Shown in pieces: positions 15,430 to 58,998 of a stretch of 64,000 bases of DNA. The translations under genes were made by a program, and so were the position numbers. The notes under the pieces were generated by a model. The model was not told the DNA's origin. It made no database searches and saw only the letters and a list, made by a program, of their open reading frames with translations. How positions within the stretch are numbered: position 1 is the stretch's first letter; each line of letters begins with the position of its first letter. The stretch is taken from the NCBI RefSeq assembly GCF_006345805.1, contig NC_043001.1, positions 19,220,001 to 19,284,000 of the forward strand. Reading direction: 5' to 3'. The stretch comes from Octopus sinensis (Eukaryota).

Positions 15430-15618
15430 ATTTTACCATTTGTAATGCGAAAAAGAAGCTTCCTTTCCAAATTGATCCATGCAATTGCGCGAAATATTAT
15501 AACGCTGGTACTTATATGGATTGTGGAGCTGGTACAATTGCGATAAATGGAGGCTGTGGACGTGATGATAAACCATGTCAGAGTAAACCTTGGCTTCGAT
15601 GCGGCATCAATATTCCAT
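15430..15618 (+). CDS. Receptor gene A, Cys-rich CBM14/peritrophin-A-like ectodomain exon (189 bp, phase 1-1)
   Basis: ttttttcag|AT TTT...CCA T|gtaagt. Reads FTICNAKKKLPFQIDPCNCAKYYNAGTYMDCGAGTIAINGGCGRDDKPCQSKPWLRCGINIP with no stop. Confidence 0.85.
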
Positions 15619-16157
15619 GTAAGTTATGCAATCTGTAACATTACATGAATTACACAACTACTTATTAATCCAATACTCAATCGTAAGTAACGCATGCGCA
15701 CACCACTATACACATAATTCTCTCTCTCTCTTTCTTCTCTCCCTCTCGCTCTCCTCTCTCTCTCTCTCTCTATATAATATATATATATATATATATATAT
15801 ATTATATAGATAGATAGATAGATAAGATAGATGATAGATAGATAGATAGATAGATAGATAGATAGATAGATAGATATGTATTATATATAATATAATTATT
15901 ATTTGAGGGAATAAAATCCAAACTTACAAGGAAAAAGAATTCAATTTAGAAATACTAAATCAAATTCCACACAATATAATATATATAAAATATTAGAAAA
16001 AAACACCTTTTATCAATTCAAAATGAATAATTAAATTACACCATCTAGAAAGTTACATATAATTGAAAAGTTAAAATTTAAAATAATTAAAATAACAATT
16101 AAAAAGTAAAAATTAAGTAAATTACAAGAATAATGTAATGTATATAATAGGTAGAAA

Positions 16158-16244
16158 AACGACACGCGTTTCGCTGCTATATTTAAGAAATGATTATAGT
16201 AGTAGAGAAATCACTTGCATATAAATATAGTCGCCCATCAGATT
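16158..16244 (-). ncRNA. Degenerate hammerhead in an AT-rich pLTR-like repeat (paralog 51435-51521)
   Basis: CTGATGG in A and CCGATGA in B (consensus CTGATGA), long stem II GCGACTATATTTA/TAAATATAGCAGC, then GAAACGCGTGTC. Confidence 0.45.
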
Positions 16245-16699
16245 AAGATATAATAGAACAGTAAAATAATAATTTAATAAATATACTTTAATATATACAT
16301 ATATATACACATATATATAAATATATATATGTATATGAAAATTCTAAATATATATAATTGAAAAATAAAATGATAATTCAATAATTAAATACTTTAAAAT
16401 TAAATAAAAAACACAAAGCTATAAAAAGTCATTAAATTGTAATCATAATAAGAAATGTTTCAAATATAGATAAATTCCTCACATAAGCTAACCATATAAT
16501 AAATATACATGTGTAGTATCTATGGATTTAATATTACAAACTATGACAAAATAGACTAAATATCAAATAATATAATACCTAATTAACTTCAATCTAGTAT
16601 TACAATTACATAATCCACCTATATATAATATATATATATATAATATATTATTGTCTCTACTAGAGCCTTAACTAAAGCTCTTTCTATTTTATTTCTAGT

Positions 16700-17460
16700 A
16701 CTAGTTAATTCCGTACCAAATCTGATTGACTCAAATTTAATGGCTCTTTTGAGGGCATACCACCATTTATTATTAATAATGGAACTGGTTAATGCCCATA
16801 CTATCTAGGTCAAATCTACAGGTCACAAATTTGGGATCACTGTTGTTGACAATATGATATTGTGGACAACTAACTATATTTTTACCATTAGTCCTAACAA
16901 TAATCCTGTCTAGATAAGATCTCGACGAACCATCGTTATTTTGCCCATATCCACAATGGAGCATCGGGTGATCCAGTCTGAATCGCTCTGTCAGCTGAAA
17001 ACGACTTAGCAAACCGCTAAGGCAAGGGATCTCCCCCAACCATCCGGGTTCGAGCCAACACGATCTACGCATGCATCGTAGAATGTGTTAAATTCACCTA
17101 ATAACACTAAAGTGTGGCGCGTTCCTTGAAAAATTCTCTAGGCTTCAAAAATAGTCAGACTGACCAGCTCACAGGGAACGTAGACAGCACCAAACTAAGG
17201 CCTTACCACTTTGTGTGTGTCACACTAAGGCGACCACCAACCTGCCCTCCGGACCTACAAAGATAGTCTTACCTCAAAATCCTGGTTTTTCCGAGTAGAA
17301 CTGCAACTCCTGTTTTTTAATATTCCTCCAAAGAGCTGAAGGACCTACACAATAAGTAGATGTAGGTGTTTTCAAATCAAAAACACCTCTCTCCTGTCAA
17401 GAGTCCCAGATGAACCACCTCGCTGCAAGTGGTGCAAATGAGGATAGTGACATCAAACTC
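16700..17460 (-). mobile_element. L1/Tx1-clade APE endonuclease fragment (paralog ~52090-52820)
   Basis: EGRLVVA, VLLIGEFN, LWVWANNDGSSRSYLDRIIV, SDHKFV (copy B) and WWYALKRAIK motifs. Confidence 0.75.
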
Positions 17461-18301
17461 CCTTATTCACCAAATGCCACATATTAGAGAAGGCCCTGAA
17501 TAAAAACAGCGTAGCAAAACAGCGGTGCCCCTGCATGACTGCAGCTCTGAGCTGAAACAACAAAAAAGCAAAAAAACATTTATATATATATATATATATA
17601 TAGGTGTATGTGTGTGTGCATGTGTGTGTGTGTGTATACACACACATATATATATACATATACATATATATACACATGTATATATATATATGCATAACAC
17701 ACATACACACACAAAATATATATATATATATATATATATATATATATATATTATATATATAAATTATACATATAAATATATTATAAATTTAGAAATACTA
17801 ATTCAAATTTCACAAAATGTAATATATATATATAAATTAGAAAAAAAAACACCTTTTATCAATTCAATAATGAAAAATTAAATTATACCATTTAGAAAAA
17901 TAACATATTATAGAAAGATTAAATATAAGATAAAAAATATAACAATGATTACTTAATCATCGTAATATGTTTTATCTTTATTTTAATCTTTCTATAATAT
18001 GTTATTTTTCTAAATGAGTATAATTTAATTTTTCATTATTGAATTGATAAAAGGTGTTTTTATTTCTAATTTATGTGTATATATATATATATTATATATT
18101 ATATATATTTATATATATATATATTATATATATATTATTATATATATAATATATATATATATACATATAAATATTATATATATATATATATATATATATA
18201 TATATATATATATATATATATATATATATATAATATATATATATATATATATAAATTAAATTGACAGAATAAGAGAAAAAATCATATTTCATGTCTTCTC
18301 T

Positions 18302-57265: not shown

Positions 57266-57413
57266 GTTAGTACTTACTCTCTTCTTCTTTGTCTCTATTT
57301 CTCCCTTCTCTTTTCTTCTCTCTTCTTCTCTCTTTCCTCCCCTCTCCTCCTTTCCCTCTTTCCCCTTTTTATTATACATGCCTAATTTATATGTTGATAT
57401 TTTTTTTACAAGG

Positions 57414-57640
57414 CGGCGAGCTGGCAGAAACGTTAGCACGCTGGGCGAAATGCGTAGCCGTATTTCGTCTGCCGTTACGTTCTGAGTTCAAATTCCGCCG
57501 AGATCGACTTTGCCTTTCATCCTTTCGGGGTCGATAAATTAAGTACCAGTTACGCACTAGGGACGATGTAATCGACTAAATCCGTTTGTCTGTCCTTGTT
57601 TGTCCCCTCTGTGTTTAGCCCCTTGTAGGTAGTAAAGAAA
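57414..57640 (+). mobile_element. SINE family C
   Basis: GGCGAGCTGGCAGAAACGTTAGCAC..GAGTTCAAATTCC tRNA-like head. Confidence 0.85.
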
Positions 57641-57807
57641 TATATATGTTGTTATTTTTTGTTTTTTCACAATATAATGGGCGATCTCATTGCACGGCAC
57701 CTGGGACAAGTCTATTCTACCATAGCCTCCAGTCGACCAAAGACATGTGAGGGAAAATTAGACTGAAACGAGAAGAGCTTCTCTGTTCCTCTTTGTGTTA
57801 TCACCAC

Positions 57808-58195
57808 TGCGTGGAGGCGCAATGGCCCAGTGGTTAGGGCAGCGGACTCGCGGTCATAGGATCGCGGTTTCGATTCCCAGACCGGGCTTTGTGAGTGTTT
57901 ATTGAGCGAAAACACCTAAAGCTCCACGAGGCTCCGGCAGGGGATGGTGGTGATCCCTGCTGTACTCTTTCACCACAACTTTCTCTCACCTTTACTTCCT
58001 GTTTCTGCTGTACCTGTATTTCAAAGGGCCGGCCTTGTCACTCTCTGTGTCACGCTGAATATCCCCGAGAACTACGTTAAGGGTACACGTGTCTGTGGAG
58101 TGCTCAGCCACTTACACGTTAATTTCACGAGCAGGCTGTTCCCTTGATTCGGATCAACCGGAACCCTCGTCGTCGTAACCGACGGAATGCTTCAA
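57808..58195 (+). mobile_element. SINE family B
   Basis: tRNA-like head GGCCCAGTGGTTAGGGCAGCGGACTCGCGG..GGTTTCGATTCCC. Confidence 0.85.
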
Positions 58196-58794
58196 CTATC
58201 ACCACTGCATGACTGTTTCGCCCCTTTTGCAGAGGCTGCGCTGTTGCATGTATTCAGACTAGTTGTGACTGTTAAGCGTTTCAGAGAACTGTTAATGGTT
58301 TCAGTGAAATTGGTAAAGAAAAAAAATTCGAATTCGAAATGAAGAACTGGATATCTTCAACATTACATCTCACCTTCTCAATGAAGCTCATCTTCTTTCT
58401 CCCCGTTATTACTTGATATATATATCAAGAGATGTTCACAGCTTTTCGTTCGCGATAGACATAACGCTAAACATCAAGAAATTGAATTAGAAACGAAAGA
58501 ACCCCATAAAATCCATGAGCAAATGCGTTCCGGTAGAGGACATCTTATCCTTTGGAAGATAGTGCGTGGTAAGGTGTAGTTTGAGGAACATTTAGCTGCT
58601 ATAACAATCAGACGGAGCTTCACTTTAAACAATTGGCCTCTGTTTTGTTACATCGGAAAGATAAAATAAAATGTAGACTTAGGTGGGTTTTGAACTCGAA
58701 ACGTAAAGAAATGTAACAAAATAGTAATAAGCGACCGATTCTACCATCCAGCCATCTACCATGACCTATATATCTTCTTTTTATTTTATTTTAG

Positions 58795-58998
58795 ATATCT
58801 TCTTCCTTCTGCAATAGTAAGGAATCGGATAAAAGTACTACAACAACGAACACAAGAAACATTAGTGAGGAATCATATGAAGTCCTAGAAGAAAAATCTT
58901 CTCCGCAATATAATAAACTGTTTTTTACGGACTATAATGAAGAACACCAAGTGAACAATGGGAACAGAAATAACATTTATCATATCGTTGAAGACTAA
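58795..58998 (+). CDS. Receptor gene B, terminal exon with a canonical ITAM
   Basis: ttttattttag|ATA. Reads ISSSFCNSKESDKSTTTTNTRNISEESYEVLEEKSSPQYNKLFFTDYNEEHQVNNGNRNNIYHIVED*. Confidence 0.8.
   Translation: MSSSFCNSKESDKSTTTTNTRNISEESYEVLEEKSSPQYNKLFFTDYNEEHQVNNGNRNNIYHIVED

Follow-up and report, generated by a model that had tools for sequence, protein, structure and literature searches.

A 64,000-nucleotide stretch of the Octopus sinensis genome (NC_043001.1, positions 19,220,001 to 19,284,000 of the forward strand; hereafter the window, whose own numbering is used unless a contig is named) contains two related genes on its forward strand, copy A (9974-24166) and copy B (41028-58998). 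Each encodes a predicted single-pass membrane protein in which a small Cys-rich head, apparently a remote relative of the CBM14 domain, precedes a Thr-rich stalk, a transmembrane (TM) helix and a tail with several Tyr motifs. The tail of copy B combines the motif YEEI with a canonical ITAM (immunoreceptor tyrosine-based activation motif), and the head exon diverges faster than its flanking introns, features by which the encoded proteins may represent immunoreceptor-like recognition receptors.

Gene models and family members

The original prediction, made from the letters of the window, had proposed four exons per copy, and all eight proved to be real, forming a single open frame in each copy with AG acceptors and GT donors internally and with matching phases. 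The short first coding exon, which that prediction lacked and had left to be located, was added in both copies by a pattern search. Its 10-nt coding part reads ATGGGAAACG in copy A (9974-9983, encoding Met-Gly-Asn and the first base of Asp) and ATGGGAAAAG in copy B (41028-41037, encoding Met-Gly-Lys and the first base of Asp), in both cases followed by gt, and an in-frame TGA lies 54 nt 5' of the ATG with no acceptor AG between the two. The resulting five-exon coding sequences comprise 714 nt in copy A and 723 nt in copy B. Letter for letter, the translation of copy A equals RefSeq protein XP_029636091.1 (isoform X3), a match for which exon 1 is needed, and that of copy B equals XP_029636088.1 (isoform X1); both are listed as Octopus sinensis "uncharacterized LOC115211618". 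Since this independent annotation gives the same proteins, the exon models are confirmed. The genes had been described as hidden, and they are indeed missed by the prokaryote-style open reading frame (ORF) track, but NCBI already models both, merging copies A and B into one gene with four isoforms. No spliced transcripts or other assemblies were on record by exact-protein look-up, and literature searches on the LOC identifiers, or on peritrophin-A combined with a TM segment and a tail, turned up no paper.

All exons of both copies lie on the forward strand. In copy A, exon 2 (15430-15618) encodes the Cys-rich, CBM14-like head with seven of the eight ectodomain Cys and is the hypervariable exon of the gene, while exon 3 (22261-22528) encodes a conserved QCR.IWP..W module, the Thr-rich stalk (22359-22445, including four TPETTTL units), the TM helix (22446-22520) and the start of RRKR. 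The juxtamembrane tail follows in exon 4 (23380-23473), where NEEIYEN at 23450-23470 replaces the YEEIDE of the family, and exon 5 (24014-24166) encodes a tail with YENL, in which a 1-nt deletion turns YDKL into YDNW and leads to an early end (24098-24142). The corresponding exons of copy B encode the Cys-rich, CBM14-like head (exon 2, 50712-50900), the QCR.IWP module with a short Thr stalk (54345-54389), the TM helix (54390-54464) and RRK (exon 3, 54247-54472), a tail segment with YVNE and YEEI (57242-57253) (exon 4, 57172-57265), and a final segment with the canonical ITAM YEVLEEKSSPQYNKL (58876-58920), a C-terminal YHIV (58978-58989) and the stop codon TAA (exon 5, 58795-58998). The translations contain every element that had been predicted, namely an ectodomain with eight Cys, a Thr-rich stalk, a 25-residue TM segment, RRKR and Tyr motifs.

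Two isoforms of the merged RefSeq gene differ from these models. In isoform X2, an intron of 40.7 kb (9983 to 50712) that skips nine exon-sized pieces links the first exon of copy A with exons 2-5 of copy B. Isoform X4 equals copy A minus 15 residues (45 nt) of the Thr repeat in the region 22359-22445, where no GT-AG intron accounts for the missing 45 nt; X4 reads PETTITL, the same as copy B of O. vulgaris. These isoforms may go back to read-through splicing, to an allele with another repeat length or to ambiguity in mapping; in the case of X2, copies A and B share the first 28 nt of exon 2, so that reads may have been mapped ambiguously.

Colinear blocks in a BLAST comparison of the window with itself place A and B within a segmental duplication of about 20 kb, the segment with copy A (6632-26598, forward) being 91-99% identical in its 5' half to the partner segment with copy B (38535-61067, forward). 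Six-frame searches of the whole genome (2.72 Gb, 13,516 contigs) recovered the head exon in only two copies, whereas the TM and tail exons are common to four genes that all lie within about 146 kb: copies A and B, g1 (LOC115211728, forward strand of C5, ending at 19,161,168) and g2 (LOC115211668, reverse strand of C5, 19,190,749-19,178,688). A fifth and far more divergent member, LOC115212034, lies on the same chromosome at 128.17 Mb and shares the five-exon layout, with a short exon 1 followed by exons for the Cys-rich part, QCR.IWP with the TM segment, YEEI and the tail, bringing the family to five genes, four clustered and one distant. The stalk consists of a 21-nt repeat (TPETTTL), and the number of units differs between the copies as well as between paralogues and species. 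The RefSeq model of g1 begins with two exons about 22-25 kb upstream (C5:19133416-19136092) that are unrelated to the family (MKGKNAEQITSMILKQLEMDDINIQDCRGQAFDNVA...), and the model looks like a chimera with a transposon-derived piece.

The copy B type, with a CBM14-like head and the 'T2' tail, also occurs in O. bimaculoides (CM046605.1:16106646-16165955, locus L072), with the head exon at 36406-36600 and tail exons at 47162-47266 and 49107-49307 of that locus. Two tandem copies are separated there by 13.2 kb of N, and no TM exon for the second copy turned up in the locus, where this exon probably falls inside the gap; isoform X1 of LOC106874494 is for that reason probably chimeric, combining the TM segment of copy 1 with the tail of copy 2. 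Combinatorial splicing of heads and tails, suggested by isoforms X1 and X2 of O. bimaculoides, was accordingly rejected in favour of two tandem copies, a gap and a probably chimeric X1.

Homologues were recovered only from O. sinensis, O. vulgaris, O. bimaculoides and Argonauta hians. Neither word-indexed searches of 5.8 billion proteins nor a head-only search returned any homologue from outside Octopoda, and an exhaustive hidden Markov model search of 1.84 billion representatives gave the same result. A single fish match covered the TM and YEEI stretch only and was set aside as an analogue, not a homologue. As far as HMMER reaches, the family is apparently restricted to Octopoda.

Topology, head and tail of the encoded proteins

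Hydropathy gave one strongly hydrophobic segment per protein (KD19 3.15), in agreement with the single-pass architecture that had been proposed. The N-terminus, which starts with MGND in copy A and MGKD in copy B, has no hydrophobic stretch (maximum 10-residue KD 0.24), and no signal peptide was found in the family models of four species. Within 15 residues of the TM helix, five Lys/Arg follow it and none or one precedes it. The ectodomain, 111-123 residues long in the window proteins, contains an even number of Cys (eight, and 10 in LOC115212034), about 37 residues separate the TM helix from the first Cys of the tail, and the N-X-S/T sequons of LOC115212034 are divided into seven in the head and two in the tail. 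We predict an N-out topology because the basic cluster after the TM helix fits the positive-inside rule, and the proteins are most likely type III, N-out/C-in membrane proteins without a cleavable signal peptide. Two other candidate features were rejected: N-myristoylation as a trait of the family, since copy A (Asn3) alone fits the pattern, which B, g1 and g2 break by their Lys3, and furin cleavage or a type II topology, on the grounds of the charge flanking the TM helix.

The head resembles CBM14/peritrophin-A in the spacing C1-x12-14-C2-x5-(C3)-x10-C4 and in the motif F.DP.xC..YY.C...C..G[T]. In Pfam, where the gathering threshold for CBM14 (PF01607) is 22.1 bits, CBM_14 was the top match of LOC115212034 at a sub-threshold 17.5 bits (E=0.0047, profile positions 1-37 of 53), and the O. 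bimaculoides orthologue LOC106871247 scored 13.7 bits, also below threshold. The cut-off is exceeded by at least 143 CBM14 domains in the genome, and the window contains none of these. When a profile of seven family heads was aligned by hhalign to a profile of 26 octopus CBM14 domains, the comparison reached a probability of 94.6 (E=7e-8, score 41.2, 38 columns covering CBM14 positions 3-41 of 57), as against scores of 10.7±2.3 (maximum 17.4) for 60 column shuffles and 11.7 for a reversed alignment; with the cluster members alone the probability was 85. The CBM14 cysteines C1, C2 and C4 align with the family head. The third, C3, had been noted as missing after YY, which is correct for the window copies, but O. 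bimaculoides (KYYSC) and LOC115212034 (YYHC) have it. Where CPxG..F has its aromatic residue after the G, A and B have Ala or Ile. The predicted likeness is in this way sustained as a remote relationship between profiles, although A and B reach no Pfam score, and we regard the head as a degenerate derivative of CBM14 that should not be filed as a member of the Pfam family. Compared with CBM14, the octopus head has an extra Cys in DPCxC and a C-terminal third that is not alignable, and compared with typical CBM14 proteins, which are secreted matrix proteins and chitinases, it belongs to a membrane protein with a signalling-motif tail and no signal peptide. Sub-threshold Pfam matches to TMEM51, ECSCR, Cadherin_C_2 and FAM176 were driven by the TM and mucin-like segments and were discarded as effects of architecture or composition, while sequence and profile searches of the PDB returned nothing beyond TM peptides.

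The several Tyr motifs ascribed to the tail resolved, in a motif scan, into YEEI and a canonical ITAM. YEEI lies about 26 residues after the TM helix in every member except copy A, and it is kept in the LOC115212034 branch, in both Octopus and Argonauta, at about 20-25% identity. This branch also carries RPLPDFP or RPLPDCP, both of which fit the class I Src homology 3 (SH3) consensus RxLPxxP. For the ITAM the pattern tested was (D/E)xxYxx(L/I)-x6-8-Yxx(L/I), and the tail of copy B contains it as EESYEVLEEKSSPQYNKL, that is, EESYEVL-EEKSSPQ-YNKL, a YxxL-x7-YxxL arrangement in an acidic context. It is found likewise in g1, g2, three O. vulgaris proteins (P0005, P0006 and P0007) and one O. bimaculoides tail (X2), and it is broken in both copy A and X1 of O. 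bimaculoides. Among shuffled copy B tails of matched composition the ITAM arose in 0.36%, YEE[IVL] in 1.1% and both together in 0.014%. Phosphorylated YEEI (pYEEI) is the optimal ligand of the Src homology 2 (SH2) domains of Src-family kinases.

Divergence of the head exon and decay of copy A

Copies A and B were compared with their O. vulgaris orthologues (L030 and L031), taking 400 nt of intron on each side as flanks. Between the two species the head exon differs by 14-16% and the flanking introns by 2-6%: exon 2 of copy A is 85% identical to its orthologue as against 94-97% in the flanking intron (Fisher p=1e-5), and exon 2 of copy B 84% as against 96-98% (Fisher p=1e-10). In copy B, the head accumulated 27 nonsynonymous and three synonymous changes over 62 codons, giving a ratio of nonsynonymous to synonymous rates (dN/dS) of 2.5, whereas the tail has no nonsynonymous and one synonymous change over 98 codons (Fisher 2e-12). 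Within O. sinensis, the head exons of A and B differ by 11 nonsynonymous changes and no synonymous one. The head Cys are all conserved, most substitutions being central (roughly residues 25-50 of the head exon). Single tests of dN/dS against 1 were not significant because the exon is short, and in the comparison with O. bimaculoides the head dN/dS was 1.3-1.7. On the longer time scale it is only the TM/juxtamembrane segment and the motifs that are tightly held. The pattern in the head fits diversifying selection acting on a putative ligand-binding surface; a local mutation hotspot, or conversion by an unseen donor, may instead have produced the divergence.

The two copies had been presented as a tandem pair, and two tandem copies are present, but copy A is a mosaic and a decaying duplicate, not the equal of copy B. 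It is 87-99% identical to copy B in the promoter, in exons and introns 1 and 2 and in the part of exon 3 that encodes the ectodomain, and the TM segment is identical to that of B (100%), whereas downstream of the TM segment identity to B falls to 73-92%. In segment-wise BLAST against the cluster and in the exon 3 alignment, the tract 22440-24210 (forward) is instead 94-98% identical to g1/g2, and the 3' flank is B-like again. We regard copy A as a younger mosaic, with a B-type head and a tail matching g1/g2. The TM-coding DNA is near-identical in the four cluster genes, only two codons of the T[F/L] position differing, and we therefore place the junction of head/tail exchange at the TM exon.

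Both signalling motifs of the tail are damaged in copy A of O. sinensis. YEEIDE has changed to NEEIYEN, and a 1-nt deletion in an A run converts the second ITAM half from YDKL to YDNW, the protein ending 11 residues later; past the deletion, the +1 frame continues LAFNELEIVNNEN, as in the paralogues. This deletion could be a homopolymer assembly error. In copy A of O. vulgaris the A run is intact, a TAA directly follows YENL, and exon 2 carries a 1-nt insertion, so that the second ITAM half has been lost in both species through different lesions. On this evidence we regard copy B as the conserved, intact gene and copy A as decaying.

Repeats and mobile elements are frequent around the two genes. 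Between the copies lie retroelement fragments on the reverse strand (28737-29450, 34694-35173 and 35625-36527), and among the fragments there one ORF has a reverse-transcriptase domain (RVT_1, 31 bits) and one contains a GIY-YIG nuclease domain (23.6 bits), as Penelope-like elements typically do; Pfam returned no match for a second, GIY-YIG-like ORF between the copies. Just downstream of copy A, the GIY-YIG ORF is flanked by a large inverted repeat (26594-28452 and 29357-31204), whose arms of about 1.9 kb share 96% identity and contain many TG/CA and TA microsatellites. Downstream of copy B, a tandem array at 61116-63598 comprises about four copies of a unit of about 601 bp at 99% identity, and its end (63591-64000) is 96% identical to 32325-32732 between the copies. 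Simple repeats include (TTC)72 at 10140-10355, about 160 nt past the first exon of copy A, which produces a spurious minus-strand poly-Glu ORF, (CGG)n at 39522-39643 upstream of exon 1 of copy B, and (AAT)70 at 49745-49954 before exon 2 of copy B. Intron 2 of copy A harbours a Tc1/mariner transposase remnant (18793-19191, forward; HTH_Tnp_Tc3_2, E=1e-14), and intron 1 of copy B contains about 4.3 kb absent from copy A (42468-43204 and 44185-47705), in which the minus-strand ORFs 45027-45449 and 46249-46689 have no Pfam match.

A candidate recognition receptor and its alternatives

We propose that the family consists, on balance probably, of immunoreceptor-like recognition receptors that signal through Src-family and Syk kinases, a reading drawn from motifs and substitution patterns. 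The exposed part would be a small disulfide-rich head borne on a Thr-rich stalk that is O-glycosylatable and varies in its number of repeats, and ligand binding to the fast-evolving head, or its clustering, would start the signal. A Src-family kinase would then dock at pYEEI and phosphorylate the ITAM, which in its phosphorylated form would recruit a putative Syk/Shark-type tandem-SH2 kinase.

Single-pass receptors with an ITAM include Drosophila Draper, which acts with Src42A and Shark, and human FcgammaRIIA. Among molluscs, ITAM-Syk signalling has been shown for the oyster receptor CgIgR (PMC6994640), which the octopus proteins resemble in having one TM segment, a ligand-binding ectodomain of their own and a cytoplasmic ITAM, with an expected Src-then-Syk relay. 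They differ from CgIgR, Draper and FcgammaRIIA in that the ectodomain is CBM14-like instead of immunoglobulin (Ig)- or EGF-like, in that a signal peptide is lacking, and in that there is no sequence homology. The transmembrane adaptors LAT, PAG/Cbp, NTAL and SIT have ectodomains of 4-40 residues and a juxtamembrane CxxC palmitoylation motif. Like LAT/PAG-type adaptors, the octopus proteins are predicted to have a type III topology and no signal peptide, and they have a basic stretch next to the membrane and several conserved Tyr docking sites, among which a Src-family SH2 site lies upstream of others; they differ in the much longer ectodomain, in the lack of a juxtamembrane Cys (KKCKK occurs in the LOC115212034 branch alone) and in the absence of homology. 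Latent membrane protein 2A (LMP2A) of Epstein-Barr virus, which combines the Src-family SH2 site YEEA with an ITAM, is a motif analogue. ECSCR, TMEM51, TMEM154 and CD164-like proteins likewise have a Ser/Thr-rich stalk, a TM segment and a short tail, a shared architecture that explains the weak Pfam matches to small mucin-type proteins; those families lack a Cys-rich head, and the matches are sub-threshold and confined to the TM and low-complexity segments. A CBM14-derived head joined to an ITAM tail without a signal peptide was a combination not found in literature searches.

Several observations weigh against this proposal. Short linear motifs invite over-reading and the scan was post hoc, one O. 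bimaculoides tail has YEDQ where the first YxxL stands, and the tail dN/dS in the comparison with O. bimaculoides is about 0.9. For the head, Pfam CBM14 gives no match in copies A and B even at E<=10, and only the first two-thirds of CBM14 align, the C5/C6 region being left unaligned by hhalign. The third canonical Cys is missing from both A and B in O. sinensis and O. vulgaris, which points to a recent loss since O. bimaculoides and LOC115212034 have it. Two AlphaFold2 runs on the family alignment, one with copy B first and one with LOC115212034 first, reached a mean predicted local distance difference test (pLDDT) score of 39 and 40 with only the TM helix confident; the head stayed below 50 throughout, too low for a comparison of folds. 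Moreover, for a disulfide-rich N-terminal domain of 115-140 residues to cross the membrane without a signal peptide is unusual.

The alternative that survives best, although we consider it unlikely, is a structural membrane mucin that tethers cells to the chitinous cuticle of the sucker lining, beak, radula or gut and uses its Tyr motifs for sorting or endocytosis (YxxPhi). The remote homology to CBM14 and the Thr-rich stalk would suit such a protein, chitin-matrix biology is prominent in a genome with at least 143 bona fide CBM14 domains, and YNKL/YDKL and YHIV fit YxxPhi. A head for an invariant polymer would be expected to be conserved, yet it is the fastest-evolving part of the protein, and it has lost the C-terminal third and one core Cys of CBM14 and has Ala or Ile at the aromatic position in A and B. 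Nor would sorting need the exact ITAM spacing, its acidic context and YEEI.

The original prediction had gone further than the receptor reading that we favour, proposing a lineage-specific polymorphic self/non-self or pattern-recognition family comparable to the polymorphic TM clusters of Biomphalaria and to the Hydractinia Alr receptors. The recognition receptor part of this is favoured by the fast head exon and by YEEI with the ITAM. Polymorphism in particular would be suggested by a head exon that diverges 3-6 times faster than its introns, by dN/dS of 1.6-2.5 between sister species with introns homogenised up to the exon, as in exon 2 of major histocompatibility complex (MHC) genes, by clustered tandem paralogues with exchanged modules and by the ITAM. 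The family is not large, comprising five genes in a 2.7-Gb genome with the head exon in two copies, one of which is decaying, and it has no Ig-like domains, so that the analogy with Biomphalaria and Hydractinia is architectural only. The comparison, furthermore, covers one haplotype per species, and the single dN/dS tests against 1 were not significant. We regard a family of this kind as quite unlikely.

Of similarly low probability is a young, weakly constrained orphan family without a specific receptor function, in which the motifs would be due to chance or be a historical residue and copy A, perhaps with others, would be a pseudogene. Its attractions are the tail dN/dS near 0.9, the frameshifted tail of copy A, the exon 2 frameshift and premature TAA in copy A of O. 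vulgaris, the absence of a fold in AlphaFold and of homologues found outside Octopoda. Weak constraint is at odds with the retention of all ectodomain Cys despite 32% amino-acid divergence, with a TM and juxtamembrane region that is invariant across paralogues and species and with the lack of nonsynonymous change in the copy B tail between O. sinensis and O. vulgaris; the architecture, exon layout and YEEI are moreover kept between Octopus and Argonauta paralogues at about 20-25% identity. Finally, an inverted topology, with a cytosolic (possibly metal-binding or myristoylated) Cys-rich N-terminus and a lumenal C-terminal part released by furin at RRKR, would agree with the missing signal peptide, with the fit of RRKR to the furin consensus RX[KR]R, with the three to five N-X-S/T sequons and Thr runs in the tails of the cluster genes and with the fit of MGNDFT in copy A to the PROSITE N-myristoylation pattern, but it is highly improbable against a charge distribution strongly opposite under the positive-inside rule, a LOC115212034 branch with KKCKK, no furin site and seven head sequons, a Lys at position 3 that breaks the myristoylation pattern in B, g1 and g2, and the extracellular location of CBM14-type domains.

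The receptor reading also has a stronger form, which we hold to be possible but unlikely: the head exon may be under diversifying or balancing selection like that on MHC exon 2, and the proteins may serve an octopod-specific innate recognition of pathogens, gametes or self that is relayed through YEEI and the ITAM to Src/Syk kinases. If true, this would be an immunoreceptor built on a chitin-binding module, a receptor type undescribed in any animal.

The locus illustrates how a secreted matrix module may be turned into a receptor head, how head and tail modules have been exchanged at the TM exon, and how one copy decays by loss of its ITAM, with different lesions in two sister species. Little is understood of the molecular side of immunity and cell-surface recognition in cephalopods, and hardly any cephalopod signalling receptor is known whose tail logic has been defined. 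A small, tractable and apparently octopod-only family with these features would be a concrete candidate for an octopus pathway of the ITAM-Syk type.

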